Shown in pieces: positions 10,096 to 48,506 of a stretch of DNA of 64,000 bases (within the stretch, counting starts at the first letter, position 1; every line of letters starts with the position of its first letter). The DNA comes from Oikopleura dioica (taxonomy: Eukaryota > Animalia > Chordata): the NCBI GenBank assembly GCA_907165135.1, contig OU015570.1, forward strand, positions 1,943,929 to 2,007,928, read 5' to 3'. Made by a program: the position numbers and the translations under genes. The notes under the pieces were generated by a model, which saw only the letters and a list, made by a program, of their open reading frames with translations, searched no databases and had not been told where the DNA came from.

Positions 10096-10942
10096 CAGAG
10101 TTGCAAATCTTTGAAATTTTTTTCTGAGCTGAGCTAGCTGAGCTGAGGTCAAAATTGAGCTGAGCTGAGCTGAGCTGAGCTGGTTTTTTTCAAATAAATT
10201 GAGCTGAGCTGAGCTGACCAATTATTTATGCTGAGCTAGCTGAGCTGAGCTGAGAAAGCTGATTTTTATTTACTACAATAAATGCCAAAAAATGTGTTGA
10301 AGCGAGTTTCAACCTTCTTGAGTAGATGGACAAGGAGCCCCTGCCCTCACACACCCCTAGACCAGCATCTCACTCGCAACATCGCACTTTTTTGACATAA
10401 AAAATTCATTCTGTCATTTAACAATAAAGAATCCTCCAAAATACTATACAGTGGTATCTTTTATGTGGATGAGCCAATGTTTCAACCTTCTAGCGTAGAT
10501 GGACAGGGAGCCCCTGCCCTCGCACACCCCTACACCAGTCTCTCACATTCGCGATCACATATTTACCATCTGTACTTAATTATTTTTTTATTGGAAGCCG
10601 TTTTTTATTTAATTTCTCTCTTGTTTCAAAGAATACTCGAATTATTTCTATCTAAAACTAACTAACAGGAAAGCATGAATAGAAATTACGTCTAAGTTTT
10701 TGAAAAAAAGACCAATCAAAAGTGGTTCGATCTTTGTCAGCTCAGTAGACTTAGCTGAGCTGAGGTTAAAATTGAGCTAGCTGAGCTGAGCTGGCTCTCT
10801 TCGAAGAATCATTGAGCTGAGTTAGCTGAGCTGAGGTCAAATTGAGCTGAGCTGAGCTGAGCTGACCCTCGCCTCAAAATTGCTGAGCTGAGCTGTAGCT
10901 CAGCTAGCTCAGCTCAGCTAGCTCACAAAATTTGCAACTCTG
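10096..10942. mobile_element. hAT-type MITE with GCTGA/TCAGC subterminal arrays
   Basis: TIR CAGAGTTGCAAA; 8-bp TSD GTTCAAAG at 10088-10095 and 10943-10950; internal direct repeat of about 70 bp at about 10306 and 10480. Confidence 0.9.
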
Positions 10943-26123: not shown

Positions 26124-27377
26124 TAGGGGGTGCACAGTGGGAAAAGCGATTCACAGCCCCCTTCCTTCATCTTTTATTTTAAGGGGCTTGACGGCCCTTC
26201 GGGCCGTTTCAGCCCCGTTCCTTCATTTTTAATTTTAAGGGGCTTGACGGCCCTTCGGGCCGTTTCAGCCCCGTTCCTTCATTCTTAATTTTAAGGGGCT
26301 TGACGGCCCTTCGGGCCGTTTCAGCCCCGTTCCTTCATTTTTAATTTTAAGGGGCTTGACGGCCCTTCGGGCCGTTTCAGCCCCGTTCCTTCATTTTAAT
26401 TTTAAGGGGCTTGACAGAGGCCTGGAACTCTGAGTTGATCAATCTCAGTTACGTCCCCAACCCCGCCCACTCCCATTGATATTTAAATTAAAATTATTCT
26501 TGTTTTTTGCTTTATTATGGTTTTTTTTTTCAATAAGCAAAATTTTCAAATTTTTCAATATTTCATTTTTTTTCCTCTGATGGCTGAGGATGGATCCGGA
26601 TGAGGTTTTTATGACGATAAAAATGATCAGTGATCTTCAGCGACCAATTTTATGCATAAAAACCCTAATATATATCGGGTTTGAGAAAAATCGCATTTTG
26701 ACCTCAGGTGATCTCACGTGACCTTTGATGACCCCAAGTCGCATGTTAACCGCATGGGACAGAAGGTGTATTCCACTGCACTTAAGGGCTTTTCAGCTCA
26801 ATAACTTCCGAACGAATCGTCCAAATTTGATGAAAATTAAAATGGTTATTCCTTCACTTTATTGGAACATGTCTGCCAAGTTTCAAGGAATTATCGGTTA
26901 CCGACCGCCCTCTGCACCGGATTATATGCGGCCTAATTGCCCTCCCGCTGAGTGTTTGCACATTGAAAACGAACCAATATCAAGGATTTTGTCTACTAAA
27001 AGGGCTTTTATATGTTTTTGGTACAGCTGATTTCAAATATTGACTTTACTTTTCCGAGAAATCTAAGTAAGAGATATTTTTTGAAATAACCAAGATATAA
27101 ATGACATTTTTTCTGCAATAAGGAAAAGAGTTATGCAAATTATGAAAGCAGATTTGAAATCTACACCCCGAAATTAGTATTGGGTATAATTTTCAAGTTT
27201 ATCCGATCAGTAGTTTTCTTAAGTGCAGTGGAATACACCTTCTGTCCGAGCACCTCTATCCCCCGATCTGTCCCATGCGGTTAAAATGATCAGTGGATCT
27301 TAGGCTTTCTATCGATGTATCATTCATCCCTATAAGAGGATGATAAAAAAATCGATTTTCCCACTGTGCACCCCCTA
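26124..27377. mobile_element. hAT-type non-autonomous element at the end of the env TM segment
   Basis: TIR TAGGGGGTGCACAGTGGG; 8-bp TSD TATATGCA at 26116-26123 and 27378-27385; internal inverted repeat of about 30 bp at about 26758 and 27248. Confidence 0.92.
26181..26415. repeat. Hairpin minisatellite, four 55-56 bp units plus a partial unit
   Basis: AAGGGGCTTGACGGCCCTTCGGGCCGTTTCAGCCCCGTTCCTTCATTTTTAATTTT repeated. Confidence 0.95.
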
Positions 27378-29149: not shown

Positions 29150-29753
29150 TTTCTTCGACAAAAGAAGCAATTTTTGTGAAGATTTTAGACTCTAGATTTC
29201 TCAAAGAAAATATTTTTTGAATGAATTTAAGACCGCTGGAACATCTCAGATGTGCTCATCCGTGCATTAACCGTATTCCGTTAAGATATTTCTGGTGTTT
29301 TTCCTTTTTATGTTTACATCACTGTTTTCAATTGTTCAACCCGCCTACCACGTGCTGAAAAGCCAGGGAGGGGTATTGGGTTTTTGACTTTTGACTTATA
29401 TTTTACCATATAAATCACTTTCAAATCCTCAATTATCAACCAAAACCTCGCGCACATTCGTGGGTGAATGCGCGCTTATGTACATATTTCACAGGAAACC
29501 ATCCGCCCAACTATTTTTCACATGTACAACCGGTTCTTGATTACACTTCTCTCTGCTGCCACGTCGCCCATGTCTGGGCTGTTTTCCTCAATAAACTACG
29601 CATTTGCAAGCTCCTTTTTTCCCGAAAAGTTCTTCGCGTCCAAATACAGTTAAACCCAAGCAACTTAAGGCCACTTTTTTGAAAAAACCCCAAAATCTGT
29701 CATCCGAAAAAAATCCAACTTAAGGCCACTTTTTTTTCCATTTTTATTCACAG

Positions 29754-30146
29754 CGATAAAGTGCTCCTGCAGAAACTCAACACCCTCGTAAATTCACGTG
29801 TAAATTAGCGCTCCAATCGTTTATTCTAGTACAACAGTTGTCAAATCTAACAGCACGGGTCTACAGTAACTCCAGCAGTGATGATGGAATCCCGAGAGTC
29901 AGCACGTGTTGAAGAAATGAAGGAAGTTGCGTCTCCGATGAACTGAACAAACCTGAAAGTATGGTTACTCTGCTGTCTTCCTGTGTCTCTAAATAAAGTA
30001 ACGTGTATCACCTCGAGAATTTGAACGCTAAGCGTATGTGAAACGGGCGGCGTGAACTCGACCGACCGTTTCTTCGCGCGTAGGTTTTCTTCCCTTAGGG
30101 CAGGCGCGCCTGTCCTGGCCAAGCTATTTCCCACTAGAATCTAACG
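29754..30146 (-). repeat. 3' LTR
   Basis: Direct repeat of 46706-47098; preceded on the minus strand by the PPT AAATAGGGGGGA (about 30147-30158). Confidence 0.95.
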
Positions 30147-30191
30147 TCCCCCCTATTTGACCGAAGTAAACCTACTAAGCATAACCTACAT

Positions 30192-31498
30192 TTAATATCG
30201 TCCTCTTGAGTTGCCGCGGCCTCCGAATGATCCTCGTTTCGGCGCGAACCCGTGGTAGTTTCCGCGTGCTGGAGCCGGCCGTTTGTAAGCTCCTTCGCCC
30301 GAGAATCCGCCGGACGAGGTACCCCATGATCTTCCGCCCGTGTGAACCTTCCAGTGGCTTGCCCAACCCGGGAGTGCCACTTTTTCGACCAAATGACGGT
30401 TCTCCTCGATGTTGAAACGGGTCTCCAAGCATCGGAGTGTTCCGTTCGAGCAAACCGTTACCAAATTGCTTGGGCGAAGGTGATCCATGCCCAACACGTG
30501 ACAGAGCCTTGCTTTATCGCCCCACCTGGCACAGTACTGTACCGTTGTGTCGAGCGACCAGTCCTCCATTTCCTGGACCGACTGGATGTATTCTAACCCT
30601 GCGGCCTGGCTTTTCATCGCCATATCGCTCGTTTCGTCGATCCATCTTCTCAGCTCTTCTGGTGACGCGTTCTCCCCGGGTTTCTGATTGAGCTAAATCG
30701 AATTTAAATGGGAAATCAATTCGATACCCGCAGCGTTTTCTCCCACGATCTCTGCGGTTGTTTTTCCGTTGTAATTACTTACCCAGTTGGGGCTCAAGGC
30801 GCTAAAGAGGCCTCTGAGGCTCTCCACATTCGCGTTGATCAAATCCTTGATCACAACTTCACTCGCCAAGTTCCAGACGCGAGCTTTTAACTCCTCCACA
30901 TTGGCACACGAGTAGAGCTTCATCCTGAACCCCGACTGCCTTGGAAAGAGCAAATCGCCCACTGTCACGAGGTAAGAGTAGAAACCGCCGATCTTGCGGG
31001 GGCTGTCTATAAACTGATTCACCAGGTCCTGCGAACCCTTCAGCTGCAGCATCAGAAATGGAACACTCTGTGTACGAGTGGTCCACTACGCTTTATCGGT
31101 AAGTCCCGTGTTTTTCAAATGATTTCAAGGTCTACCTGTTCCTCCAGGAGGAAGATCTGGCGTTCAGCTTTCGCGATTCTGTCGCAGATCATTCGGAGAG
31201 CGGCCAAGAATTTTTTGACCTCTTCGTCATCCTCGTGTTTTTTCACGTCCTCGATCTTCTTGAACGTGTTTACGAACTGCGAGACCATGACCCCACACTT
31301 CAGCTCGTGTTTTGCCATTGCTGACTCCTCCGAGATCCTCATATCTCTAGCGAGATTATGTTGACCCGAGGTCATTCGGCGGTTGTCGTTTTGCTGGAAC
31401 ATGCTTCTCTCGACTTGAGCACCCGTGTTTTCGCCTAGATTCCGAAACGAAGGCCTGTCGGTCTCCATCGGAGCTGCTGAATCTTTTTTGGGCGGCAT
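30192..31498 (-). CDS. Accessory gene S3, about 400 aa in three exons, with RGG-rich C-terminus
   Basis: Exons 31498-31136, 31085-30747 and 30692-30192 join in frame via 50- and 54-nt GT-AG introns (second donor uncertain); TTTAG acceptor 5 nt before the ATG. Confidence 0.65.
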
Positions 31499-31642
31499 TC
31501 AGTCTAAATAAACCAAGAATCAACTAAATGAAACTAAATTTGGCTATTTCTGAAGGCCGCCGGCTTGGAATTTCCACGTGTTAATCTTCTTCCTCAGCTC
31601 CTAAATAGTGTTGTTAGGACTGAAATAACCGACGTATTTTAG

Positions 31643-33282
31643 CGAATTCCCGAAGCTTTATAAAAGGGACCTTCCGGCGGTGGAAGCTTTCTTCCAAGTT
31701 TTGGCTACTCGGCGTGAACTCCACCCGCATCGGGCTCGAGATCTTCTCTATGATTTCGAGTTCGATGCACGCTCTCAAAATCCCCAACGTGGAACTCGCC
31801 GTGCGTACCGGGACCCGAACACCGGCCGATCGACCCAAAACGTGACTTCCCTTCGCGCTTTATCCTCGATTTTCGAGGTGGAAGTCACTGATGCCCACAT
31901 CCGACGTGGCAAGATACCCGTGGTCGTTGCTATTCCCCACGATGGACGTGCTGTCAACCACCGATGTGAGGTCAAGCTCCCTAGCCCTGGGCAAGTCGCT
32001 CAACCCGTGCAATCACTCTACTGTGAGTATCAGCAGGCAATCAACAAGATTGACGATGACCGCGTCACTGAGGACGACCGTACTATCGCTTGCCGACGAT
32101 TTCTCGTGAAGATGCTCCGCCACGTGACTCTCCGCCTGGGCGACGCCCATTTTTTGTTTCACGTCATCGCGAAACACTTGCCGCACGAGATTGGAGGTGG
32201 TGACGTTCACCAGAAATTCCATTACAGCTTCTCGCACGCTCCGCCGTATCTCGTGTTCTTGCTGTGGGCCCTGGCTTTGCACTCGGTAATCTAGACTCAC
32301 GTGGACATTATAAATTTATTCTAATTTTTAGCGCGTGTTGCACGCTCGCCGATGGGGATGGACTCCTGAAAACGGGCGCCCGCACGGCCTAGTTTTCGAC
32401 AGGAGTTCCCTGCGGGACCCCGAATCTGAGCAGTCGAATGTACTTGCCTGTATCCGAAACATCTTGGGCGTCAACTTCAACAACCCCGAGCATGCGCAGC
32501 GTCGCATCCACCCCCATGACAACACTAAAGGTGAACCGCTTCTTCTTTTTTCCTCGGGCTAAAATAAATTTTTTAGTCCTTGTGACTCTCCACTTCAACG
32601 ACATGCCCCGGCTTTTCACCGATGCCAACGTTAGCATATTGCTTTTTGTGGCCCTCTACATGCACCAGTGCACGGAGCGCCACTCATTTGTAGCCCAAGT
32701 AAGAGTCCTTTACCTGCTTTTTTGATGACACGTGTTTTGCGCGGCTTCGTGGCTGCCGATGTAACGTCGGCCGGAAATTCATCTTTGTTTAGGATGAGTC
32801 CTGCGTAGTGTCCGTCTGTGGCCTCGTTTGGCTCGGTGGAGTTTTCTCGACGCCACGTGTACTCGTGAAATCCGGTGGGCTCCGGTTACTCTACGAGTTT
32901 TTTACGAAGGCCGGGATCTACTTTCCTAACTTTACCAAAAGGCGCGTCGACGGAGTCGAAAAGGACTACTTTCCCCGTGACGTCTTTTCTCATGCTCGTG
33001 AGTCTTTTTCCTTGGCTACAATTTCCTAACTTCTAACTAGGTTTGCACCGTGTATTCTGTAAGGGTAGCCTCGAATTATTTTTGGGGCTGGACCTCATAA
33101 AGGAGATCCTGAGGACCAACACGATGGAATTACCCGTGCTTCCTATCGTGCCCAATCCAATGGACGACATTCGCGCTCCTAACTGGCCCGCCATCGACTA
33201 CCTTACTGCTCAGCAAGAAGCCGCTGACCCGAATGCGCCAACTCCACTTGGGGGATACGGACGGATCTACTACCTGCTCTGA
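31643..33282 (+). CDS. Accessory antisense gene A1, at least 465 aa in five or more exons, unknown family
   Basis: GT-AG introns 32286-32331, 32531-32576, 32699-32792 and 32998-33040 all join adjacent ORFs in frame; possible first exon 31528-31577; AATAAA at about 33592. Confidence 0.8.
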
Positions 33283-33562
33283 TCCTTTCCTGGCTCCTCT
33301 TTGAACCTGACGATGTTTCCTCCACGTGTGGCTCCGCCCGAGTTTGTTTTCATTTTCTTAGTCGGCTGCGAGAAGTGGTATTCTTCCAGCCAACCTTAAC
33401 TTCCTTTTCCGCATTTACGTGTTTTGATTTCTCACCTTCTATTTTCTTCCGCTTTTCGGCTCTCGCCGCCATTTTCCCGAAATTATTCAGTATCGCCCGT
33501 CTAAGGCTGGCTTCGGTTTCAGCTTCATTTTTTCCGAACTTATCCACGACTCCTTTTCCCAT
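33270..33562 (-). CDS. Accessory gene S2, 83 aa, basic, two exons
   Basis: TTTCAG acceptor 3 nt before the ATG; 41-nt intron 33435-33395; stop overlaps the 3' end of A1. Confidence 0.55.
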
Positions 33563-33662
33563 TTTCTGAAACAAATTTCCATCATTTTCTTAATAAAACT
33601 TTTAAAACTTCAATATCTTTTCCGACATCGTTTATTGACTAGCTATTTGCAGAAACAGTCAG

Positions 33663-34390
33663 TCACGAGTAGCAAAATTTCCCGGGATCAGGATGAATTC
33701 TAGCCGCGGAGCATCGGGCCAGCATCTTCTCGGTCCATGTCTTTGTAAGTGAGTGAGACTTGAGAGTGATCATTAAAATTTCTAAATTACCCTCGTCAAA
33801 ACCAGCGAAACGTTGGAAACGTGCAGCGTCTTCTGCTCGACCAGCCAAGCTGTTGTTGACATCCCGTGCTCGAAGTGGACGTGCTTCCGAAGTTATGCCT
33901 CGAATATTCACCATTTCCCTCATCATAAGACCTGGGAAATTGCACGGGTCGACATCCAGTGTGCTCGCAACGCCGACCACGTCCTGGACCATCTTCTTGA
34001 ACTCGCCGATCATTCTGCGGTGCCCTCGACTCTGAGCTTCGACGACTGAAATTAAAACTAAGTCCTCGTTGATGTCACCACCACGAGATTACCTTCAATC
34101 AGATCGCTCAGCTCACTTCTCACACGTGCAATTCCAGCTTCAGCCGGGTTCACCAGCGCTGTGGTCACGGGACGAGACATTGCCCTGTCGATGGCAAGCC
34201 CGCACTCGGGGCAAGATGCGCATTCGTCAACGCATCCGATGCAGATTCGGTTGTCGCAGCTGTGAATCACACAACGGCGCTTGGTAAAGTCCATCTCACG
34301 GGTACATACTGAACATCGGCCCAAAACAGAGTCTGGGAAGTTATTCAGGAACATCCGAAGATTCACTCTTTCGACGCGGCCCTCGTCCAT
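33663..34390 (-). CDS. Accessory gene S1, 226 aa, degenerate RING-finger protein
   Basis: CSVC...CDNRICIGC...CPEC (Asn at the usual His position); 47-nt intron 34092-34046 joins in frame; acceptor 13 nt before the ATG; AATAAA at 33636-33631. Confidence 0.75.
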
Positions 34391-35560
34391 GACACCCGTG
34401 TTTCTAAAATCCCGAGTGACGTGAGTAAAATGGTAACATAAATCAAGACAGCTGGCAACAGTTTAACTCCATGGTAAAAATTATCTTCTCGATCATTTCT
34501 CTTTTTTCCATTTTTATTTATTTGTGAAATACGAAATATGAAACTCAACTCGTGCTCTCGTGTTTGCTAAAATACCGGTTGGCAGCTCGTCATTGGTCCT
34601 TGATTTCTGGCTCGACGCGGCCGCTTCTCGTCCTTACTCACTGCGCCATGTCGTTGGCTCGAAAAGAGAAAAGGCCTTGGGACGCGTCCGAAACCCTGCC
34701 TCATGCTGCTCCCCATCGGGAAGCAAAAATACCACGTGACTCTGACAATGCCCGAGCTTCAACCCGGGTCGATTCGCCGATGCCACCGCCACCGGTACCT
34801 CCGGGCGTTAACAGTATGTCGTCTACGCCGCTGAAGATAACTTCTGTCGTTCCGCAGCTCGACGAGAGCAGAATACCCTTGCCGTCACTTGGTGCCTCGG
34901 GTATGTCAGTTGACGATCCATCACTTGCACATGAGGCCACTGTTATTGCTCAAAGGTCTGAGCTTCACGTGGATGCCAGCAGTAACTCCGCGTCTGATGT
35001 TACTACCGCTATAATGACTAGTATGGGCAATATTCTTGACAAACATGTGCATAGGAAACCATTGAAGAGCGAGGCTGATTCAGCCGAATCGACACAGTTT
35101 CCACCATTGCCTGCTTTCTTGCCACGTGAGGACCCCCTTGCTCGAAGGTAAAAACCCCGAGCCACCTTAACTAACTTTCAGTTATTCTCTCGGGCATCTT
35201 CCTTCAAAACTCTTTCCTGAGTACGAGCTCGAACTTCTCAAGAACTTCTCAGAGGGGCCCCTTCTCATCCATCACGAGTTTGTAGATCTTCGCCGGCAAG
35301 CTGGGATGCCCCAAAAAATATTGCAGCATCCTTTCTCCCGAGTCAAGCAATTTCTACTTCCGAAACGAAGGCCTGTCGGTCTCCATCGGAGCTGCTGAAT
35401 CTTTTTTGGGCGGCATTCAGTCTAAATAAACCAAGAATCAACTAAATGAAACTAAATTTGGCTATTTCTGAAGGCCGCCGGCTTGGAATTTCCACGTGTT
35501 AATCTTCTTCCTCAGCTCCTAAATAGTGTTGTTAGGACTGAAATAACCGACGTATTTTAG

Positions 35561-37201
35561 CGAATTCCCGAAGCTTTATAAAAGGGACCTTCCGGCGGTG
35601 GAAGCTTTCTTCCAAGTTTTGGCTACTCGGCGTGAACTCCACCCGCATCGGGCTCGAGATCTTCTCTATGATTTCGAGTTCGATGCACGCTCTCAAAATC
35701 CCCAACGTGGAACTCGCCGTGCGTACCGGGACCCGAACACCGGCCGATCGACCCAAAACGTGACTTCCCTTCGCGCTTTATCCTCGATTTTCGAGGTGGA
35801 AGTCACTGATGCCCACATCCGACGTGGCAAGATACCCGTGGTCGTTGCTATTCCCCACGATGGACGTGCTGTCAACCACCGATGTGAGGTCAAGCTCCCT
35901 AGCCCTGGGCAAGTCGCTCAACCCGTGCAATCACTCTACTGTGAGTATCAGCAGGCAATCAACAAGATTGACGATGACCGCGTCACTGAGGACGACCGTA
36001 CTATCGCTTGCCGACGATTTCTCGTGAAGATGCTCCGCCACGTGACTCTCCGCCTGGGCGACGCCCATTTTTTTGTTTCACGTCATCGCGAAACACTTGC
36101 CGCACGAGATTGGAGGTGGTGACGTTCACCAGAAATTCCATTACAGCTTCTCGCACGCTCCGCCGTATCTCGTGTTCTTGCTGTGGGCCCTGGCTTTGCA
36201 CTCGGTAATCTAGACTCACGTGGACATTATAAATTTATTCTAATTTTTAGCGCGTGTTGCACGCTCGCCGATGGGGATGGACTCCTGAAAACGGGCGCCC
36301 GCACGGCCTAGTTTTCGACAGGAGTTCCCTGCGGGACCCCGAATCTGAGCAGTCGAATGTACTTGCCTGTATCCGAAACATCTTGGGCGTCAACTTCAAC
36401 AACCCCGAGCATGCGCAGCGTCGCATCCACCCCCATGACAACACTAAAGGTGAACCGCTTCTTCTTTTTTCCTCGGGCTAAAATAAATTTTTTAGTCCTT
36501 GTGACTCTCCACTTCAACGACATGCCCCGGCTTTTCACCGATGCCAACGTTAGCATATTGCTTTTTGTGGCCCTCTACATGCACCAGTGCACGGAGCGCC
36601 ACTCATTTGTAGCCCAAGTAAGAGTCCTTTACCTGCTTTTTTGATGACACGTGTTTTGCGCGGCTTCGTGGCTGCCGATGTAACGTCGGCCGGAAATTCA
36701 TCTTTGTTTAGGATGAGTCCTGCGTAGTGTCCGTCTGTGGCCTCGTTTGGCTCGGTGGAGTTTTCTCGACGCCACGTGTACTCGTGAAATCCGGTGGGCT
36801 CCGGTTACTCTACGAGTTTTTTACGAAGGCCGGGATCTACTTTCCTAACTTTACCAAAAGGCGCGTCGACGGAGTCGAAAAGGACTACTTTCCCCGTGAC
36901 GTCTTTTCTCATGCTCGTGAGTCTTTTTCCTTGGCTACAATTTCCTAACTTCTAACTAGGTTTGCACCGTGTATTCTGTAAGGGTAGCCTCGAATTATTT
37001 TTGGGGCTGGACCTCATAAAGGAGATCCTGAGGACCAACACGATGGAATTACCCGTGCTTCCTATCGTGCCCAATCCAATGGACGACATTCGCGCTCCTA
37101 ACTGGCCCGCCATCGACTACCTTACTGCTCAGCAAGAAGCCGCTGACCCGAATGCGCCAACTCCACTTGGGGGATACGGACGGATCTACTACCTGCTCTG
37201 A
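35561..37201 (+). pseudogene. Second copy of A1 with a 1-nt insertion in a T run
   Basis: Duplicate of 31643-33282; frameshift near 36070. Confidence 0.7.
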
Positions 37202-38309
37202 TCCTTTCCTGGCTCCTCTTTGAACCTGACGATGTTTCCTCCACGTGTGGCTCCGCCCGAGTTTGTTTTCATTTTCTTAGTCGGCTGCGAGAAGTGGTAT
37301 TCTTCCAGCCAACCTTAACTTCCTTTTCCGCATTTACGTGTTTTGATTTCTCACCTTCTATTTTCTTCCGCTTTTCGGCTCTCGCCGCCATTTTCCCGAA
37401 ATTATTCAGTATCGCCCGTCTAAGGCTGGCTTCGGTTTCAGCTTCATTTTTTCCGAACTTATCCACGACTCCTTTTCCCATTTTCTGAAACAAATTTCCA
37501 TCATTTTCTTAATAAAACTTTTAAAACTTCAATATCTTTTCCGACATCGTTTATTGACTAGCTATTTGCAGAAACAGTCAGTCACGAGTAGCAAAATTTC
37601 CCGGGATCAGGATGAATTCTAGCCGCGGAGCATCGGGCCAGCATCTTCTCGGTCCATGTCTTTGTAAGTGAGTGAGACTTGAGAGTGATCATTAAAATTT
37701 CTAAATTACCCTCGTCAAAACCAGCGAAACGTTGGAAACGTGCAGCGTCTTCTGCTCGACCAGCCAAGCTGTTGTTGACATCCCGTGCTCGAAGTGGACG
37801 TGCTTCCGAAGTTATGCCTCGAATATTCACCATTTCCCTCATCATAAGACCTGGGAAATTGCACGGGTCGACATCCAGTGTGCTCGCAACGCCGACCACG
37901 TCCTGGACCATCTTCTTGAACTCGCCGATCATTCTGCGGTGCCCTCGACTCTGAGCTTCGACGACTGAAATTAAAACTAAGTCCTCGTTGATGTCACCAC
38001 CACGAGATTACCTTCAATCAGATCGCTCAGCTCACTTCTCACACGTGCAATTCCAGCTTCAGCCGGGTTCACCAGCGCTGTGGTCACGGGACGAGACATT
38101 GCCCTGTCGATGGCAAGCCCGCACTCGGGGCAAGATGCGCATTCGTCAACGCATCCGATGCAGATTCGGTTGTCGCAGCTGTGAATCACACAACGGCGCT
38201 TGGTAAAGTCCATCTCACGGGTACATACTGAACATCGGCCCAAAACAGAGTCTGGGAAGTTATTCAGGAACATCCGAAGATTCACTCTTTCGACGCGGCC
38301 CTCGTCCAT
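37189..38309 (-). CDS. Second copies of S1 and S2
   Basis: No differences seen from 33270-34390 (offset 3919). Confidence 0.7.
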
Positions 38310-38566
38310 GACACCCGTGTTTCTAAAATCCCGAGTGACGTGAGTAAAATGGTAACATAAATCAAGACAGCTGGCAACAGTTTAACTCCATGGTAAAAAT
38401 TATCTTCTCGATCATTTCTCTTTTTTCCATTTTTATTTATTTGTGAAATACGAAATATGAAACTCAACTCGTGCTCTCGTGTTTGCTAAAATACCGGTTG
38501 GCAGCTCGTCATTGGTCCTTGATTTCTGGCTCGACGCGGCCGCTTCTCGTCCTTACTCACTGCGCC

Positions 38567-39647
38567 ATGTCGTTGGCTCGAAAAGAGAAAAGGCCTTGGG
38601 ACGCGTCCGAAACCCTGCCTCATGCTGCTCCCCATCGGGAAGCAAAAATACCACGTGACTCTGACAATGCCCGAGCTTCAACCCGGGTCGATTCGCCGAT
38701 GCCACCGCCACCGGTACCTCCGGGCGTTAACAGTATGTCGTCTACGCCGCTGAAGATAACTTCTGTCGTTCCGCAGCTCGACGAGAGCAGAATACCCTTG
38801 CCGTCACTTGGTGCCTCGGGTATGTCAGTTGACGATCCATCACTTGCACATGAGGCCACTGTTATTGCTCAAAGGTCTGAGCTTCACGTGGATGCCAGCA
38901 GTAACTCCGCGTCTGATGTTACTACCGCTATAATGACTAGTATGGGCAATATTCTTGACAAACATGTGCATAGGAAACCATTGAAGAGCGAGGCTGATTC
39001 AGCCGAATCGACACAGTTTCCACCATTGCCTGCTTTCTTGCCACGTGAGGACCCCCTTGCTCGAAGGTAAAAACCCCGAGCCACCTTAACTAACTTTCAG
39101 TTATTCTCTCGGGCATCTTCCTTCAAAACTCTTTCCTGAGTACGAGCTCGAACTTCTCAAGTACTTCTCAGAGGGGCCCCTTCTCATCCATCACGAGTTT
39201 GTAGATCTTCGCCGGCAAGCTGGGATGCCCCAAAAAATATTGCAGCATCCTTTCTCCCGAGTCAAGCAATTTCTACTTCATTTAGGTGACGATTTTCACT
39301 ACCTAATTTTATTAATTGAACTGAACGAAGGGAGGACTCTTTACTACACACGTGTTGCTCCTCCTTGCTCCTTCAATCTATCATTTCCACCAGCCGTGGA
39401 CGTCAAACCCGGGCCTTTCACTGACGACTTCGCTCGCGCGCTTCAAGCCCTGCTCACGTGTTATCTTATCTCACTTAGTGAGTATTATCGAGGAAGTTGT
39501 TTTGTTCAAATCAGAACGGAAGCTCACAAACAGCGCCTCAACGATTTCACCCACGAGCTCTGCGATCACTTCTTCGGCCAGACTTTCGGAAAAGAATACC
39601 GACCGCCCTTCCTTGTGCAATATGAAGATCGTCGATCTCGAGGATAA
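38567..39647 (+). CDS. Accessory antisense gene A2, about 333-348 aa, Pro/Ser-rich N-terminal half
   Basis: The 34-nt intron 39067-39100 joins ORF 38471-39070 in frame to ORF 39225-39647; possible in-frame 45-nt intron 39286-39330; copy 1 (from 34648) is truncated at the duplication junction. Confidence 0.7.
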
Positions 39648-40696
39648 CACTCCCTTGACCCCAATCGTCACGAGTTCCGCCCGTGAGAGATCCGCTCGTA
39701 TACGACGCACGATTACACCTTCTGCCGCACTTGTTCTACTATTCTTCACTTTCCTCCTTTTCGTCATATTTTTCATCACACGAGTTTCGGTATTTATTCA
39801 TGACCGCCTTGCAAAACTTTCCGCCTTCGTACACCGTTTCCATCTACCAAAACCCGTGAGTACTCGAATAACCTAGATCCGCCGCGTCAATTATTTACTC
39901 AGCGTTTCCATTTAGGGCTTAATCCGGCGACGTCGCTCGTTCATGGGTGGGAACGACTTCCTTTCGATAGGAGCCGCCACTCCTGCGCCTGACTCTCTTG
40001 TCTCTGCTGGACGTACCGTCAACACTGACCTCACTGTTGGTGGAGCAACTCCTTGGGAATGGTAAGCCGTTACTCCTCCGTCTAACTTTATAATTAACGC
40101 CCACCTAGGGTCACGTTTAGCGTCTTCTCTTTCTTCTGCTTTTTATGCCTCGTGTGCTTTTGCGGCCGCCACATCACTGACAAACTTCAGCGTTGTACCT
40201 ACGCTCTGCCCGCGCCTGGCGCCGACGAGGATTCCAGCGAGTTCGCTCAAGTGCACGCCCTTTGACGGCGAATTGCTGCAGACCGCCAGATGATCAAGGC
40301 TCGAAAAGTCCACACCAAAGTCACCCATGAGCTGAAAGCTCTTGGACCCCGGCCGAGCCTGATGCTGATGAACCCGCGCAATCGCTTCCTACAGTAGGTA
40401 ACTCCTCGTTGATTGCAGGCACCCGGGATCCCGAGCCACTTCTGCACGAGTCGCGAGCGCAAACTCCTCTCTGGTCCTGATTCGACCTTCTTCTTCTGCA
40501 AATTTCGATAAATACCCGTGGCTATTGTTAGAAACTTGCATAATTCACTTCGTAAAATTTCACACGTGTTTACAAATTTTTCTTTAAGCTACCTATTCCA
40601 CCAACATTCTCCTTTGAAATATTTGTCCTTATGACAAATATTATCTTTTGATTATTCAATTTAAATCTCCTAAACCACGAGTGCTCATAACCCGTG

Positions 40697-42559
40697 TTAA
40701 CTACTCTCTGCATACTTTCTTTCGTTGCCAAAGCCCAATAAACATTCATAATCTACCTCCGGACTCTCCCATTTGCTTCTGTCAGTCACAACTGATCTCG
40801 CATGCATGAACTCAGGTAGCATGAGATCCTCGTTTATTCCGAGCATCATGAGTCCGGCTTTACTCGGGTCTGTGACGCAATTGCCGTCGACGATGGCTCT
40901 TATGGCCTTCAGCGCCCACGAATAGACTCTCTTCCGCTTCAGCCCGACTTTCTCCGTGTATACAAGCCCCTCAAACCAGTCTACCCCATCGGGGTACTCT
41001 TCCGTGCCGACCACTACGAAGTAAGGGTTCAAGTCGTTTTTCTGCCATTCTCCCTCGAGCAGCAGGTAATCACCCACTTTAATCGGCTTTTCGAACTCGT
41101 CATCGTAACTGTCACCCTTCTCGTACGGGTGAAACACTATGGGTTTCCGCGTTCGGCCCTTCTTCTGATTCTGCAGAAACGCTTTTCTGCCTCGCTCTCT
41201 GCTCAAGGCAATGTGCTCAATAATTTTCTTCAAATTAACGTCAACTGGCTTATCGAACTTGTCACGTGAAAAGTATATTTCATTTGGCGTGTACCCGTGT
41301 CTGCTCGGAGTTTCGTTCAATCTCGCCGCTGCTTCTACTGCCACTCGCATTGGTGACCCTTTCTTTGAGATTTCAGCTTTCAGAAACATCGTGAGCTTCT
41401 GGACCCGTGTATCCATCGGCGAAAGATGGTTCTTTGACCTGGTTGATTTCTCTGGCAAGTTTACCGACACCTTCCAGTCATTCCAAACATCCCTACCAGC
41501 GATGTTCTTGTTCACGCTACATCCGTCGAGGAAGATCTGGATTCTTTTCTCGCGAATTGGGCCGCGTAAAAACTCGCCTACTGCTCTGCAGAGAACTTCT
41601 GTGCCTTTATCCGCAGTCATTTCCGAGTTTTTATTGGGTACAACTTTGTCAAACCCGAGATCGCTTCTGAGACTACCCAAAATTTGAGCGTGGACTCGTC
41701 CGCGCCTTGGTACGCATTTCTCGTGATTACATCTGCGAAAAGGACCTGGCCCACTTCTTTGGGAGATTCGTCATTGTACTTTTTGGTATAACCTCAATTC
41801 TAGCCTGTTTCCTAAAATAGGTACAGCCCGTGCAACTCCGGTGCACCTTCTCGATGACCTTGTTCATCCCTGGTGACCAGAAATTGCATCTCACGTGTTT
41901 TTAAACGCCGTCAACGACGTGCAGCCTGTAACCTTCATCATTTTCCTCGTGAGTAATTCTAAGTACTCTAAAGGAACAACCAACGGTTCAACCTTCTTAT
42001 CTTCCACGAAGAACGCTTGTTTGTACAGGACGCTTGCGCCGTTCTCTTCCTTGATCTCACAAGATTTGCGTAAACTCTCCGCAATCCTGTCCCCGTACGG
42101 CATTTTCCCATTCTTCCTCTTCGATTCTACAGCTCTCTGCACGTGCTTGTCAGTGAGCTGCATTTTACGAAGCAATGGGGCATTCTCCAGAAACTCCTTC
42201 ATCGAAAACTTCTCCAGATATTCTTCGATTTCCTCATGAACTTTTCTGGCATCCTTTATGAACGGAGTTTCCTCGTCCACTCCATCTTTTACTCACATTC
42301 TTTTCGCACGTGCTCGCGTGGCCATCATGGAGATTTCCTCCTCTACCTCAATCGGCTTTAGCTCCTCGAAACACGTGGCCTGTTTCAGCGCGTGGCGGAA
42401 ATCGTTGCCGTTCTCAATGAGGAAAATGCTGTCGAACGTCTCAATATTCACAACGGGCTCCTTGGATTTACACTCGACCCTTCCGGCGCAAGACGCGTCC
42501 TTTTTGATAAATACCCGTGACGGTCGACCTCCAAACACATTCTGCAATCCCCATTGCAA
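40697..42559 (-). CDS. pol: Integrase region of pol, split by single-base indels and one TGA
   Basis: FWSPGM...SCTGC zinc-finger half, VLFADVI, IFLDGCSVN, SPMDTRVQKL, LNETPSRHGYTPNEIYF and a C-terminal extension. Confidence 0.85.
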
Positions 42560-44724
42560 GGGACTAGATGATCATCAGATCTCGACAGCATGTCCGCAAG
42601 ATCTACCTCCGCCGACCTGCAACTTTTGTAGACAATCTTGATGTTATACGACATCAGCTTCACGAGTCGCTCATTTATCTTATAATCCTCTGCCAACTCC
42701 TGGCCATTCAAACCTCTCTTGTACAACTTTTCTACAGATATCGAGTCTGTAATCACTGTCACCGGCTTGTTTACCAAGTCGATTTCCCACGAGCAATGGA
42801 TTACTGCGTTTAAAATCCCGTGTAATTCTAACAAACAGCTGCACCACTGGGTATTATTGCCCGAGTCGGGTCTCTTCTTCGAGTAGAGCTTGTTCAGTCT
42901 TACCTTTCCCGACTCATCTTTCTGATACAAAAATGCACCCGTGCCTTTGTTGCTCGAGTCAACGACGAGGTATGTCTCAAGCTCAGACACCACCGGGTAA
43001 AGCGACACCAAACTCTCGTCTAATTCCTTCTGGACTTTCTTATACGAAGCGATCAGCTCCTCGTTCCAAACTATATGCTCGGCCAAGCTTTTCTTGTTTT
43101 TCGTGGCCTCATATAGAGGAGCCAAGATTTCAGTTCTAAATGGAAGCGAGTCCGCGATGTACGTGATCCATCCCAAAACTCGCTTCATACATTTTACCGT
43201 TTTTATACCCGTGTATTCCTGCTTTGCTATTTTATCTAACACGTGTGTGCTTGCTCGGATTGTGCCGTTCGACACCCGTCTGCCGAGGATCGAAATGTCT
43301 TTGCTAAGAAACGTACACTTCTTTCCTTTGAGTCTTAGGTTGAACGCGCTCAACGTCTGAAGCACTGCAGCCACGTTTTCCAAAAATTCCTCCGGTGAAT
43401 CCCCGACGATGCAGATGTCATCGACATAAATGAAGCAATACTTTCTGTGGCTGTATAAAATTATCTTCAGCTTTTCACGTGCTAACAACGGGCTCGAGAG
43501 CCAACCCTTTGGCAATCTGCGATATGCCATCGGCCCCCTTTCTGGATGATCCAAGCAAAAATGTGGCCACATAGCCGGATGAAACCTAAAGCAATAGAAC
43601 ATCGACGCAATGTCGATGCATGCGATCAGGCCACTTTCCGTATATTTCGCCACCTTTTGCAACACGTATTTGATTGAGTCGGTCTGCCGGGCCGAATGAA
43701 CCGTGTCATCGTTGATTTTCGCCCTTTTGCAATCCGCCACAACTTTTATTGAGCCTGCGCACAATTCCACCTTCGCAGTTTCCGCATTTTTCTTACCAAC
43801 AGGGAAAAAACTCAGGAAATGCTTCGGAGTCATGTGCTTAGGTAGGAAACCAATCACACCTTCGCTGGCTTCCTGGTCTAGCTTGTCAACTAGGGCTTTC
43901 ACTACAGACTCGTTCATTGACTTGTTATAACTTTGTCTGACGATCTTGCCCGACGTATTTCCCGTGATTTCCGAATATATCTCGAACTCATCTCCCGGGA
44001 CACACCCTTGAGTTCCTTCAAAAATGACCTTCTCTTTTTCCAGGATACTATTCAGTCGTTTCAAGTAATTCTTTCCATCCGGGATACTCTTGATAACCTC
44101 ACCGGTTACATCGATTTTGCATTCATTCCACGTGTTGATCTCACGTGCCTCCTGATGCATTCTCTCTAACTTTCTTGCATACTCAACTCTCGAATCTGGA
44201 TTGAGCCTGTCAGTGGGTCTCATCTCGATAACTGAGCTCGCGATACTCGGGACCAAGGTATCACACCTTACTGCCGGTACTAATCGCTCATTTCTTATAA
44301 CTTCATACAGGTTGAAATTATGGACTAAATTTTCTAGTTCAAACACGTGACTCATCTTCTTGAAACCTAGATTACTGATATCGACTCCGCGAATCGACAC
44401 CCTTGTCTCAAAGCACTTTTCACGTGGAACACATTCGATCTTCGCGCAATTCCTAGCTAGATCGCCCAGCGATACCAACACGCTCCTGTCGTCTCCTTCG
44501 CAGACCTTGGCGTCAACGAAAGATATCTTCACGTTCCTTTTCAGCCTCAGCGTGAATGATACTGCAACCGGCAGAAATTTCAACAGGCTGCCACCTGCTA
44601 CTTTTCCTGCGCCTGCATTCGCTCTCCTGATCTTTACGCCCCTGCTCGTCTTAAGCAAATTAAACAAACTCTCACTCAACAAGGAGACTGAAGCTCCAGT
44701 GTCAAGCAGTAACTTGAACCACAC
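42448..44724 (-). CDS. pol: pol: protease, RT and RNase H (758 aa open frame)
   Basis: LLDTGASVSLL; IDIASMFY...RLPKGWLSSP...YVDDICI; LVVDSSNKGTGAFL...TVITDS...LADMLSR. Confidence 0.95.
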   Translation of the reverse strand: MWFKLLLDTGASVSLLSESLFNLLKTSRGVKIRRANAGAGKVAGGSLLKFLPVAVSFTLRLKRNVKISFVDAKVCEGDDRSVLVSLGDLARNCAKIECVPREKCFETRVSIRGVDISNLGFKKMSHVFELENLVHNFNLYEVIRNERLVPAVRCDTLVPSIASSVIEMRPTDRLNPDSRVEYARKLERMHQEAREINTWNECKIDVTGEVIKSIPDGKNYLKRLNSILEKEKVIFEGTQGCVPGDEFEIYSEITGNTSGKIVRQSYNKSMNESVVKALVDKLDQEASEGVIGFLPKHMTPKHFLSFFPVGKKNAETAKVELCAGSIKVVADCKRAKINDDTVHSARQTDSIKYVLQKVAKYTESGLIACIDIASMFYCFRFHPAMWPHFCLDHPERGPMAYRRLPKGWLSSPLLAREKLKIILYSHRKYCFIYVDDICIVGDSPEEFLENVAAVLQTLSAFNLRLKGKKCTFLSKDISILGRRVSNGTIRASTHVLDKIAKQEYTGIKTVKCMKRVLGWITYIADSLPFRTEILAPLYEATKNKKSLAEHIVWNEELIASYKKVQKELDESLVSLYPVVSELETYLVVDSSNKGTGAFLYQKDESGKVRLNKLYSKKRPDSGNNTQWCSCLLELHGILNAVIHCSWEIDLVNKPVTVITDSISVEKLYKRGLNGQELAEDYKINERLVKLMSYNIKIVYKSCRSAEVDLADMLSRSDDHLVPCNGDCRMCLEVDRHGYLSKRTRLAPEGSSVNPRSPL

Positions 44725-46690
44725 GTGTTCTTTTTATTCAAAACCTTCTCACAATCAGGCAAGCAAAAATATATCTGCAACAGTCTTCTATCCGGAGCCC
44801 TCGAATCGTCGCGTGTCGTTGAGTCTACTGTTGCCCTTAATTTACAGTCGTTGAATTCACCTAGCTTCGCGAAAATCTCACCTTCCATGTTGAACTCGTC
44901 GTAGCCGTCTTTCGCCTCGATATCCAAATCCTCCAGCAAAGTGTTTATGTCCTCGCTGGACTCTGAACCCGAGTATTCACACTGTGACCGTAGCTGCATC
45001 AACTCGTGAACCGCCACGTCGTCCTGGAGTGCATATACCCGGGGATTATTCGATCGACGTACTCCCTTCTTCTTTATAAACCTGTTAAACTTTCCTTTTA
45101 TGTCAGGTCTTTTGAATTGTCCACGTGGTTTAAAGAACTTATCTGGCTGATCTTTCTTCATCAGTTCAAGGTCACGCTTGTTCAAGCTCTGCCCCGTGTA
45201 AGCCAGAATTTTTCCCGTTCCAAATTCCACTTTAAGGTCCGGACTATTCTTGATATGAGCCAGTCCCACGTCTTTTGATTGGCTCTTGGGAAATTTGCCC
45301 GGTTCTGAGATCGCCACTTTTCCACTCTCTGAGCGCCAAATTTGTTTGACACAAAGGCGTTTAATTCCGCCTCTATGTCTTCATCAATAGCGTCCACCTC
45401 GTCAATTTCTTCGGGAGTGAAACTCTTCACGTGATCATTCTTCCTTTTCTTCACCGCGCTACTCTGCTGTGAGCAGACAAACGCCAGTGTCGACCGGAAG
45501 TCACTTGTGAACATGTCTAAAGCCAACTCCACCTGAGTCAATTCCACGTGTCCCTGCGATTTAGACGCCTTGTCAATTTCGTCAAGAAACAAACGCTTCT
45601 CAACAATAATATCCCTGTTCAACAGGTCTTTGAACTCAAGCGCCTCTTCGCAGCTACCTTCTCCAAAATGTACTCCCATTTTCGAGCATCCAGACCAATT
45701 GCGCAAAGCGCTAAAGCTGTCGACTCTGCAAAAGGACCGAACTTGTCAGGAGTAGTGCAGAATTCTTCTCTGAATCTGCTTACACCCATAGGAGTACCAC
45801 GTGGAAATCTCTCTGGGATAACGGCATTATTTGTCATAATCTTTTTCATCAACTTTTTAATGATATCGTACATAGAACTTGTCTTCACGTGCGCTCATTC
45901 CCCCGGCCTACGACTTGGAGAAATTTCATAAATTTCAAAAGTCATTAGTCCTGGAGTTGTCTGCGTAGTCTCTTATCATTATCTGAGCATAACTCGAGAG
46001 ACTTGTTACATAGCCATTTCTGACATCTTCCCGAGATGTGTCCTCTACGTTCTCGCAGATCACGGGGCATATCTTTCTAACCACCGCCAACAACTCATCC
46101 GCCGGCGACCTTCTGTCACCGACACGTTCAAAATACCGCTGAAGCGGCAACTCTAAGCCCGGGAAGAAAGTGTCTTTAAACGCTCTCTCGCTAATATTTC
46201 GAGGCTGATTTGGGTTATCCATGAACCCGTCACGTGTTGCGTTCACAGTGCATCTTTCTAGGACGCCCGTGTACCTTCCTTCTAAACGCCATTCCTCGAA
46301 CATTCCCAGACTGTCCGGAACCGATAACCGGCCCGTAAGGTCTGGCAATCCGTCGTCATGCTCGCCCCAAAGTAATGGAACATTTGATACCTGGTCTGCA
46401 AACCGGTTATCCTTGTCATTCTTTCGGATCTCTGCCGAAAGAATACCCGAGATATGATTTAGCCATCCCAGAATCTTCTGGGATCGAACACTATCGTCCG
46501 CTGCCGTGAAGCAAAGAGGTACGATTTCCTTTCCACTGTAATATTTCAGCCCCGGAGGACACTGAAACATACCATTATTCTCATACGCATTCATATTGCT
46601 CATACAAAGACGAGGCCTCGAGGTTTGAAGATCTGAGTTGCAGTTCGTGCCCAAAGCGTTTGGTCTCGAAATCAGGTAATTTCTTCCCAA
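44676..46690 (-). CDS. gag: gag-like region in four consecutive frames
   Basis: Position between PBS and protease; basic C-terminal segment; no CCHC knuckle; two internal junctions repair by adding one base to a homopolymer. Confidence 0.65.
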
Positions 46691-46691
46691 A

Positions 46692-46705
46692 GCTTTCAGT
46701 CACCA
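46692..46705 (-). promoter_or_regulatory. Primer-binding site
   Basis: TGGTGACTGAAAGC directly after the 5' LTR; the first 7 nt equal the known tRNA-Trp PBS start TGGTGAC. Confidence 0.75.
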
Positions 46706-47098
46706 CGATAAAGTGCTCCTGCAGAAACTCAACACCCTCGTAAATTCACGTGTAAATTAGCGCTCCAATCGTTTATTCTAGTACAACAGTTGTCAAATCT
46801 AACAGCACGGGTCTACAGTAACTCCAGCAGTGATGATGGAATCCCGAGAGTCAGCACGTGTTGAAGAAATGAAGGAAGTTGCGTCTCCGATGAACTGAAC
46901 AAACCTGAAAGTATGGTTACTCTGCTGTCTTCCTGTGTCTCTAAATAAAGTAACGTGTATCACCTCGAGAATTTGAACGCTAAGCGTATGTGAAACGGGC
47001 GGCGTGAACTCGACCGACCGTTTCTTCGCGCGTAGGTTTTCTTCCCTTAGGGCAGGCGCGCCTGTCCTGGCCAAGCTATTTCCCACAAGAATCTAACG
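46706..47098 (-). repeat. 5' LTR
   Basis: Direct repeat of 29754-30146; termini CGTTAG...TTATCG. Confidence 0.95.
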
Positions 47099-48506
47099 CA
47101 GTAAGTAAATCGCAGGAAAACAGGCGAGATATGGGGAGATAAGATATTTTACGTAAAAATTTTCACCCAACTTAAGGCCACTTTTCAAATTAGCTGTCAT
47201 CCAAAAAGTGGCCTTAAGTTGGGGTTTCACTGTAAAACAGTCATAAATCCAGTCCCAAAACTCTTTTTGGGATTGTCTTATCAACCCTTTTTTTAATTTG
47301 TTATTTTATTTTCTTTTTATAATCCTTAAAGGCATTTAAATAATCCCTAAAACTTTTAAAGGATTGACTTTTGAAACAAAAAAATTAGAATTTTTGTGAA
47401 CTACCCTAATCATTTCCCTTATGATTTTTAACGTATGACGTAATAAAATATAATGATCCTCAGGTCACGAGGATCTTTTTCATGTATTGTCGACTCATTT
47501 TCATGACATTAGTTTTTCAGTTTTTTCGATTTTCTGGCTTTACACGTATCTTTTGGCCAAAAGCTAGGGACGTTTTGTGCTAAGAATTACACGAGCAATC
47601 TATTTCTGTTATCGGAAAGATCCAATTCGGACTTTCGGAAAATTTGATTTTCTAAATTTCATTAAAATTATTATCAGCGGTTTCAGTTCCTGTAAAGTAT
47701 CGTCGAATAAATATATTCATAGAGCAATAGCATAAAAGAATTTTAAGATCTCAATGTGAAAGAAAATCAACAAAAATCACCAAATTGAATGGCTATTTGC
47801 ATCTTTTTGAAGTTCGATCAAAAAAGGGGGATTTTATTTTTCTGACGCTATTGGAATGATCAAGAACTAAATCAATAAAAATCATAATCATCCATAAGAA
47901 GGGTCCATGCTAAAAAAACTTTTTAAATAATGGTTTTTAGGTCTTTTTTCTTCAATATAAAAGATGAAGATCTGGAAGAGCTTAGTTAAAAAAGCTAAAT
48001 TTTTACCGAAAATCGAAAAGGATTGAGGAGTTATGAAGAAAAATAAGAAAACCATCATAAATTTTCGATGATTCAAATAAACAAGAGAGAAAATCGAATT
48101 TTCGATTTCAAAAATAAATATACGAATAAGTTATCCGACCGTCAAATCCCAATTATAAAATAGAAACTATCTGTCTGATAAAAAATTATTTTTTCATTCA
48201 GAATCTCGAAATCATGATAGATAAAAAAAAAATTTTGCAAAAGTACCTTCATTTTGTGAAAAGTCTTTCCGGAAATCAGGTCTTCCACCCGGTAAATCTT
48301 CCAGCATAAGGATCCTCCAAGGTCCTCCGAAAAAGATGGATAAAATATTCATAGTATTGAACAAGAAGATTGTATCTTCTTTATTTATTCGTCTTCCAGC
48401 AAAGTGGATCTTCCGTTGGAGGAGTCCTCCGGAACGGAAGGGTCCTTCAACGTCACGTTGTCAAATAACGACCGAAGAATTCTAGATGTTAGACTTTTTC
48501 GGGGCG

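Follow-up and report, generated by a model that had tools for sequence, protein, structure and literature searches.

We analysed a 64,000-nt stretch of the Oikopleura dioica genome (GCA_907165135.1, contig OU015570.1, positions 1,943,929 to 2,007,928 of the forward strand; hereafter the window), in which positions 29754-47098 are occupied, on the minus strand, by what its sequence indicates to be an intact and very young Tor-like Ty3/gypsy element with long terminal repeats (LTRs). The palindrome CACGTG is spread over the whole of this element at about 12 times the number expected by chance, and it ranks first among all 4096 hexamers in the non-redundant sequence of the element. CACGTG is the class B E-box, and its core sequence is matched here by 46 exact copies. 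The features of the element are listed below by position in the window (ORF, open reading frame; RT, reverse transcriptase).

29795-46860, both strands (palindrome): 46 CACGTG sites found by pattern search, 34 of them independent
46706-47098, minus strand: 5′ LTR of 393 bp, direct repeat at an offset of 16952, with CACGTG at 46747 and 46855
46696-46705, minus strand: primer-binding-site-like TGGTGACTGA, directly after the 5′ LTR, assigned by its position and TGG start
45935-46690, minus strand: gag-like ORF of 251 aa, with weak similarity to the N-terminal part of the relative P0002 (E=8e-5), collinear in tblastx
44676-45706, minus strand: two overlapping ORFs of 174 and 213 aa in different frames, between gag and protease, with four CACGTG
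42448-44724, minus strand: protease/RT/RNase H ORF of 758 aa (Pfam RVT_1, 7.5e-14; RT_RNaseH_2, 1.7e-8)
40697-42280, minus strand: integrase-region ORFs of 129 aa (41891-42280) and 327 aa (40697-41680), in separate frames
30147-40696, minus strand: post-pol accessory region of about 10.5 kb (6.6 kb non-redundant), with short protein-like ORFs
about 31440-35357 and 35358-39280, minus strand: 3.92-kb unit present twice in tandem (offsets 3918/3919), with 10 CACGTG per copy
30147-30158, minus strand: polypurine-tract-like AAATAGGGGGGA, G-rich, directly before the 3′ LTR, assigned by its position
29754-30146, minus strand: 3′ LTR, direct repeat, with CACGTG at 29795 and 29903

The two LTRs are identical at 392 of 393 positions, which points to a very recent insertion, and a 3-bp direct repeat (CAG, at 29751-29753 and 47099-47101) stands at both ends as an apparent target-site duplication. 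The LTR termini (29754, 30146, 46706, and 47098) read CG...CG rather than the usual TG...CA, and the target duplication is just 3 bp. Protease, RT, RNase H, and the integrase region follow one another in this order; the 758-aa ORF contains DTGA and YVDD motifs, with a weak Pfam match for the protease, and the two integrase-region ORFs match the C-terminal portion of the relative P0001 (BLASTP E=1e-9 and 2e-34). No Pfam integrase model scored in these two pieces, between which the frame is interrupted, and no Pfam match was obtained for the gag-like ORF or for the 174- and 213-aa ORFs. At least six ORF pieces make up the broken gag-pol frame; each was searched separately, as it stands. No second copy of the element is present within the window. 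Being apparently intact and young, the element carries a load of the word that is compatible with activity. Its GC content is 0.49 (0.33-0.42 in the relatives described below) and its sense strand is rich in purines (A 0.29, G 0.28); the observed/expected ratio of CpG is 1.14 in the element, 1.04 in the remaining window, and 1.03-1.28 in the relatives, and a ratio above 1 gives no sign of methylation-driven CpG decay.

The initial annotation of this stretch had reported about 46 copies of CACGTG in the element and about eight elsewhere. The first figure is exact, and the second undercounted the background: a pattern search and a recount both give 58 copies in the window, 46 within 29754-47098 and 12 in the other 46.7 kb. 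The annotation had also recognized that some sites are redundant, for which it gave 36 sites in 13.4 kb of non-redundant sequence; the redundancy stands and the figures do not, as removal of one LTR and one tandem copy leaves 34 sites in 13,033 nt, so that the LTRs and the tandem duplication account for 12 of the 46 sites as duplicates. The flanks of the 34 sites are unrelated to one another, and a sensitive self-BLAST of the non-redundant element found no internal repeats; we therefore treat the 34 sites as independent. Their density is about one per 380 bp. Counting the companion words C[AT]CG[GT]G as well raises the number on the sense strand to 86 in the non-redundant 13 kb, and the whole family of words reaches about one per 100-150 bp. 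As had been claimed, each LTR has two sites, and the others fall in gag-pol and accessory DNA in differing frames; every compartment is enriched (observed versus shuffled counts of 2 versus 0.09 in the LTR, 18 versus 1.2 in gag-pol-integrase, and 14 versus 1.4 in the accessory region). In 2-kb bins, the limits of the enrichment coincide with the LTRs.

The excess is independent of composition and codon usage. For the 34 observed copies, the Markov expectation is 2.8 at order 0 or 1, 4.5 at order 2, and 12.2 at order 3 (13,033 nt), and 1000 Altschul-Erickson dinucleotide shuffles gave a mean of 2.86 with a standard deviation of 1.63 and a maximum of 10 (z=19). At the codon level, six ORFs contain 14 CACGTG, as compared to 2.6 in synonymous-codon shuffles (maximum seven in 500 shuffles) and 0.8 in codon permutations, with all three reading frames used (5/6/3). 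Enrichment thus persists by a wide margin under both dinucleotide- and codon-preserving shuffles. In 13 of the 24 peptide contexts that are able to spell the word silently, the word is spelled, and CNCGNG is spelled in 18 of 24; control hexamers are spelled in only 0-9% of their encodable contexts, and the pol genes of relatives spell CACGTG in 0 of 6 and 1 of 11. For example, all five His-Val pairs are encoded by CAC GTG, whereas His elsewhere in the same ORFs is encoded by CAT 17 times and by CAC eight times (P ~9e-6). Synonymous positions have visibly been recruited to CACGTG.

It is extremely improbable that base composition, codon usage, internal repeats, or an error of assembly gave rise to the pattern. 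The element is indeed richer in GC and CpG than its surroundings, and the duplicated sites lie partly in a tandem duplication that could be an assembly artefact; these points are outweighed by the z value, the 5-fold excess over synonymous-codon shuffles, the order-2 expectation of just 4.5, the lack of internal repeats, and the unrelated site flanks. Composition, codon usage, and internal repeats were accordingly rejected as the source of the pattern by the Markov models, the 1000 dinucleotide shuffles, both codon shuffles, and the self-BLAST. The copies of the 3.92-kb unit differ by one mismatch (35243/39162) and one indel in a T-run (32150/36068), and the duplication either is very recent or arose in the assembly. 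Differences between the LTRs and between the tandem copies were also considered as a read-out of mutation, and are uninformative (two mismatches and one indel in all).

The word is built around a central CpG from two halves that act together: CACGTG is found 34 times versus 9.6 if the halves were independent, a 3.5-fold synergy that is expected of a dimeric reader. The CCCGTG/CACGGG and CTCGTG/CACGAG variants, which the initial annotation described as frequent, are borne out, and strand-wise counts sharpen the picture. CACGGG occurs 24 times on the sense (minus) strand, where 2.8 are expected, and five times on the antisense strand; the corresponding sense and antisense counts are 15 and 6 for CTCGGG, 13 and 12 for CTCGTG, and 12 and 13 for CACGAG, and the palindromic CCCGGG occurs nine times. 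No enrichment was seen for CACGCG (5 and 0), which is the classic class C site. The variants retain one perfect CAC half-site and end in G (position 6); of the 105 CACG sites in sense orientation, 75 have a G at position +5, and CACG-N-G ranks N = T > G > A. Some extensions are likewise more frequent in sense than in antisense orientation (ACACG 40 versus 15, TACACG 11 versus 0, and CACGGGT 14 versus 3), and correction for composition preserves the bias (CACGGG enriched 8.5-fold versus 2.9-fold, and ACACG 3.4-fold versus 1.3-fold). The flanks of the palindrome itself are roughly symmetric, with ACACGTG found 15 times in sense and nine times in antisense.

Several simpler accounts of this shape were tried and rejected. 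Other palindromic hexamers are near expectation, which excludes a general preference for palindromes; other alternating pyrimidine-purine hexamers, of the kind prone to form Z-DNA, number 119 versus 134 expected; a longer hidden motif is excluded by flanks that hold at most 0.11 bit per position; and no helical or nucleosomal phase signal was found, only a mild evenness. CACGGGT is not a splice donor, since it is present also within the uninterrupted pol ORF.

A context-specific mutation, repair, or editing bias (for example, mismatch repair towards CpG, or a bias of the RT) could leave behind a word without function, and this we consider quite unlikely. Repair is known to shape oligomer frequencies in bacteria, where very-short-patch repair provides a precedent, and such a bias would affect all compartments alike, as observed here with non-coding DNA included; the gradation among the related words that share a central CpG and the shift of composition from the relatives (GC 0.49 versus 0.33-0.42; GC at third codon positions, GC3, 0.59 versus 0.52) also agree with it. 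However, all six positions are specific and the halves show 3.5-fold synergy, whereas known eukaryotic contexts span one or two neighbouring bases; one-step transition neighbours of the word are not clearly depleted (about 11 versus about 15 expected); several word-creating differences from the closest relative need at least two base changes (e.g., Ser AGC to TCG); uniform mutation predicts a Poisson spread rather than under-dispersion; and the neighbouring retroelements of the same genome are unaffected. Composition or ordinary context-dependent mutation could produce this pattern only with great difficulty.

Strand bias brings in another explanation, in which the word is read on single-stranded genomic RNA or cDNA as a dispersed packaging, dimerisation, export, or protection signal; this is in our view not very likely. 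It would be bound by Gag/nucleocapsid or a host RNA-binding protein, or would work by pairing of the self-complementary CACGUG copies with one another. Such a signal would account for the strong sense bias of CACGGG, CACGGGT, ACACG, and TACACG after composition correction, for coverage of the entire transcribed unit and nothing beyond, and for a spacing more even than random, as for coating or a multivalent signal; in addition, one accessory ORF has a tail rich in RGG, which is frequent in RNA-binding proteins. On the other hand, the six bases are predicted to be unpaired with the same probability as control CpG hexamers (0.347 versus 0.330, P=0.76), by which a shared RNA loop or stem context was rejected; no shared stem-loop or flank context was found, the window has no Rfam match, and the strongest word is a perfect DNA palindrome with roughly symmetric flanks.

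A HMMER scan of 1.84 billion representatives with the 758-aa ORF gave 56 relatives below 1e-30. The best of them are 33-38% identical over the full ORF; the top match lies within a 14-kb LTR element of Oikopleura dioica (GCA_000209535.1, 38% identity, E=9e-143), and the next matches are on marine metagenome contigs, Tara samples included, in an order given by sequence match. Two further loci (L009 and L010) were obtained with a degenerate DNA pattern. Searches for copies closer than 65% identity, by a full-pol word search, a metagenome/viral-contig search, and exact look-ups of six accessory ORFs, found none, and a word search with a 260-aa piece of pol gave only a 55% match. The family comparison covers eight loci with six related elements, at 33-65% protein identity:

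L001, O. dioica relative, element of 14.3 kb: 0 CACGTG
L002, metagenome relative: 4 CACGTG versus 2.5 expected
L011, metagenome relative: 1 versus 2.1 expected
L012, metagenome relative: 3 versus 1.5 expected
L013, metagenome relative: 2 versus 1.2 expected
L015, near-identical copy of the L013 element: 2 versus 0.7 expected
L009, closest reachable relative, 65% identical over RT-RNase H, GC 0.39: 1 versus 0.4 expected
L010, the L009 element from another sample: 1 versus 0.2 expected

All eight counts are near expectation, and a family-wide trait was rejected. Conservation among family members, by which the initial annotation proposed to judge its enrichment, is thus absent at these distances, and the word is a lineage-specific feature fixed at the nucleotide level; that it is specific to a lineage does not show it to be functionless. 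What the relatives do have in common is a CpG observed/expected ratio above 1 and a long post-pol region. In a 930-nt codon alignment with L009, CHCGDG occurs ten times in the window element and once in L009, and only the window element uses the word to spell the peptides ARE, GTG, HGI, and DSS, which both elements encode. The differences include silent ones: Ala-Arg-Glu is GCA CGT GAA in the window element and GCT CGA GAG in L009, and Gly-Thr-Gly is GGC ACG GGT and GGC ACA GGA, respectively. GC3 in this segment is 0.59 versus 0.52.

In the O. dioica relative (element at 8015-22300 of L001), the top word is a different one, GTACAA/TTGTAC, found dispersed 25 times versus 5.5 expected (z=8.1 versus a shuffle maximum of 5.3); GTAC occurs 52 times versus 26.7 in the element, and the 7.4-kb flank contains just two GTACAA/TTGTAC. 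Since z values of about 8 are also reached by other real, repeat-containing sequences, this signal is a hint. No outstanding word was seen in the remaining relatives.

Lineage specificity raises the possibility that the reader is encoded by the accessory region, which is found in this lineage only, and that word and reader co-evolve with each lineage having its own word; we hold this to be unlikely. It would agree with the absence of enrichment from the eight loci, with a 6.6-kb accessory region that has no similarity (tblastx) to the post-pol regions of L001-L003, and with the weaker dispersed word with a palindromic GTAC core in the O. dioica relative. The accessory region contains protein-like ORFs, among them a piece with a RING-like Cys/His pattern (C-x2-C...C-x-H...C-x2-C...C-x2-C; 34061-34462, minus strand), a piece with an RGG-rich C-terminal tail (30195-30692, minus strand), and a Met-initiated charged ORF (31118-31498, minus strand). 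Searched as single pieces, the accessory ORFs gave no Pfam match above cut-off and no significant match to PDB sequences, with a sub-threshold RING/Siva-like match alone, and no env-like protein was recognised. In particular, no basic helix-loop-helix (bHLH) or other DNA-binding domain was recognised in the ORFs of the element (26 pieces against Pfam and three against PDB sequences). An element-encoded bHLH or other DNA-binding domain was rejected on this basis, and the lack of a sequence-specific DNA-binding domain counts against an encoded reader in general, as do the hint-like nature of GTACAA, given the z values of repeats in real window sequences, and the absence of an outstanding word in the other relatives.

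A further reading is a lineage-specific self word, a palindrome that silent codon choices would have brought to near-saturating density along the entire element, with a dedicated, possibly element-encoded dimeric factor that would mark, tether, package, or shield the DNA or RNA of the element; we give it a low probability. The identity of the word would then turn over between lineages, at which the GTAC-core word of the O. dioica relative hints.

The background also contains CACGTG in excess. Outside the element, the window is mildly enriched, with 12 copies versus 4.0 expected, a number reached by 0.2% of shuffles (P=0.002), while two other retroelements in the window have 0-2 CACGTG per 2-kb bin. 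In the flank of the O. dioica relative (L001:1-8014, FN653018.1), which includes 2.6 kb of N, CACGTG ranks first among hexamers (7 versus 0.6) in 5.4 kb of real, gene-free sequence, and these sites are mostly T/C/G-CACGTG-A. This over-representation suggests that these genomes put CACGTG to use as a word, and it fits a host factor that employs it.

A word that is hexamer-specific, lineage-specific, evenly spread, and placed at silent positions points to selection on the word, and selection for the word itself is well supported. As to how it is read, we tentatively favour recognition on double-stranded DNA by a dimeric sequence-specific protein, such as a host bHLH-leucine zipper (bHLH-ZIP) factor, as one possible explanation. 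Selection on the nucleotide sequence would have filled one Tor-like lineage with CACGTG and the weaker CACGNG and CNCGNG variants, by silent codon choices plus some amino-acid changes, and a putative dimeric protein would read the word on the double-stranded proviral DNA. The candidate reader would be a host bHLH or bHLH-ZIP protein of the class B E-box type (Max partners, USF, TFE/Mitf, or Hes/Hey-like), which might cover the provirus from end to end and determine its transcription or the state of its chromatin, e.g., germline-linked expression or resistance to silencing. We infer that a protein is the reader and DNA its substrate, and likewise the protein's identity and the effect of its binding. 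This explanation is ranked first because of the palindromic synergy, because bHLH and bHLH-ZIP dimers are the known readers of CACGTG, and because recruitment of host factors by mobile elements is established.

Several observations weigh against this explanation. The companions CACGGG, CTCGGG, ACACG, and TACACG are strand-biased, unlike what is predicted for a symmetric dimer on DNA. Flank information is tiny, at most 0.11 bit per position beyond the six bases. The spread is under-dispersed, with a per-kb variance/mean of 0.50 for CACGTG and 0.29 for CWCGKG (C[AT]CG[GT]G), and such an even spread is unlike ordinary enhancer clusters. The excess is without conservation, as none of the eight related loci shares it. 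Finally, an A flank is found at 24 of 68 half-sites in the element versus 3 of 40 in the background (Fisher P=0.001). The spacing of sites also has a coefficient of variation below random for three nested motif sets (P=0.07, 0.019, and 0.004), and a homotypic enhancer cluster was rejected, the sites being under-dispersed and lying inside coding sequence in all three frames. The flanks typical of particular factors (T-CACGTG-A for USF/TFE; C/G for Myc-Max) were not found at the sites of the element: the base at -1 of the half-sites is A in 24, T in 19, C in 16, and G in 9 of 68 (information at most 0.06 bit), and T, present at 19 of 68 half-sites in the element, is present at 18 of 40 in the background. 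This suggests that the copies in the element are not simple mimics of host sites.

Evenness of spread, flanks without information, and companions with a strand bias all speak against use as a classical enhancer, and they keep an RNA/cDNA code and an element-encoded reader alive next to the host bHLH factor, and we leave the remaining part of the probability to something else. For the distributed cis code that the initial annotation proposed, support is partial: nucleotide-level fixation and an even, whole-element spread speak in favour, and family conservation, which is absent among the reachable relatives, does not.

The remainder of the window contains other repeats. The RT/RNase H ORF of one other retroelement lies at about 6 kb (minus strand) and that of a second one at about 20.6-22.1 kb (plus strand). 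A 53-bp tandem array (16 copies, 13848-14711) and a related inverted 56-bp array (26154-26415), 72-76% similar, bracket about 12 kb with protease-like and RT ORFs (20615-22085, plus strand); judged from this arrangement, the stretch could be a DIRS-like retroelement with inverted terminal arrays. Pentanucleotide arrays of (GAGCT)n are present at 1370-1480 and 10125-10920, and the minus-strand retroelement at 3.7-8 kb, whose RT_RNaseH_2 ORF lies at 6051-6491, also has frequent TGAGCT, about 15 copies over 4.2 kb. An inverted repeat pair of 895 bp, 99.5% identical and with a 600-bp spacer (54101-54995 and 55593-56486), has CACGTG at 54332 and 56251.

Tor elements are Ty3/gypsy-like LTR retroelements of Oikopleura dioica (PMC4402516). 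The window element shares with them the gene order gag, protease, RT, RNase H, and integrase region, a collinear gag-pol similarity (33-38% identity) to an O. dioica element, a long post-pol region, and LTRs adjoining primer-binding- and polypurine-like tracts; it differs in that the relatives we fetched have a GC of 0.33-0.42, no excess of CACGTG, and accessory regions without detectable similarity to its own.

Class C or Hairy-type sites are CACGNG, and CACGAG is a non-canonical Myc-Max site; the family CACG-N-G with N = T > G > A resembles these, although CACGCG is not enriched here and CTCGGG is enriched without having a perfect half-site. Low-affinity Myc/Max sites have also been described (PMC5515408). 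A study of O. dioica promoters found TCTAGA, TATA, and a TFAP4-like E-box, and not CACGTG. Nothing relevant to CACGTG in Oikopleura or in Tor elements came up in the literature that we searched, and saturation of a whole element is not described there.

Local clusters of binding sites for host factors are a known feature of mobile elements, for example the 12 Su(Hw) sites of Drosophila gypsy and the USF E-box in the LTR of human immunodeficiency virus type 1. Here, too, there are several copies of a short word readable by a host DNA-binding protein; the known arrays, however, are local (a few hundred bp in an LTR or untranslated region), whereas the present one runs evenly through 13 kb, overlies coding sequence by way of silent positions, and shows no flank preference. 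To our knowledge, no described retroelement has its whole body, coding sequence included, overwritten by one palindrome at about 12-fold enrichment and in about half of the encodable positions. If a host bHLH factor is the reader, an element would here be governing its own chromatin or germline-linked expression in a novel manner. The case is directly testable, with a short exact word in 34 independent places and neighbouring elements as internal controls.

If the reader is encoded by the element or acts on RNA, the element would have a code for recognizing itself, and such codes have until now been described chiefly in bacteria and RNA viruses. In single-stranded RNA viruses, dispersed packaging signals are presented in hairpin loops; like the present family, they are many short degenerate motifs found genome-wide and partly in coding sequence, and some companions here are sense-specific, but the sites have no common structural context, their pairing being that of controls. 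Bacterial genomic words, such as Chi, the DNA uptake and uptake signal sequences (DUS/USS), and the FtsK-orienting polar sequences (KOPS), are over-represented, dispersed oligomers that mark self DNA for a dedicated reader. They share with CACGTG in this element a short oligomer far above expectation, in coding and non-coding sequence alike, fitted by codon choice; they differ in being chromosome-wide, mostly orientation-dependent, and served by known machinery, whereas here a palindromic word fills one eukaryotic retroelement, which, if CACGTG is a self word, would make it a eukaryotic counterpart of bacterial uptake- and Chi-type genomic words.

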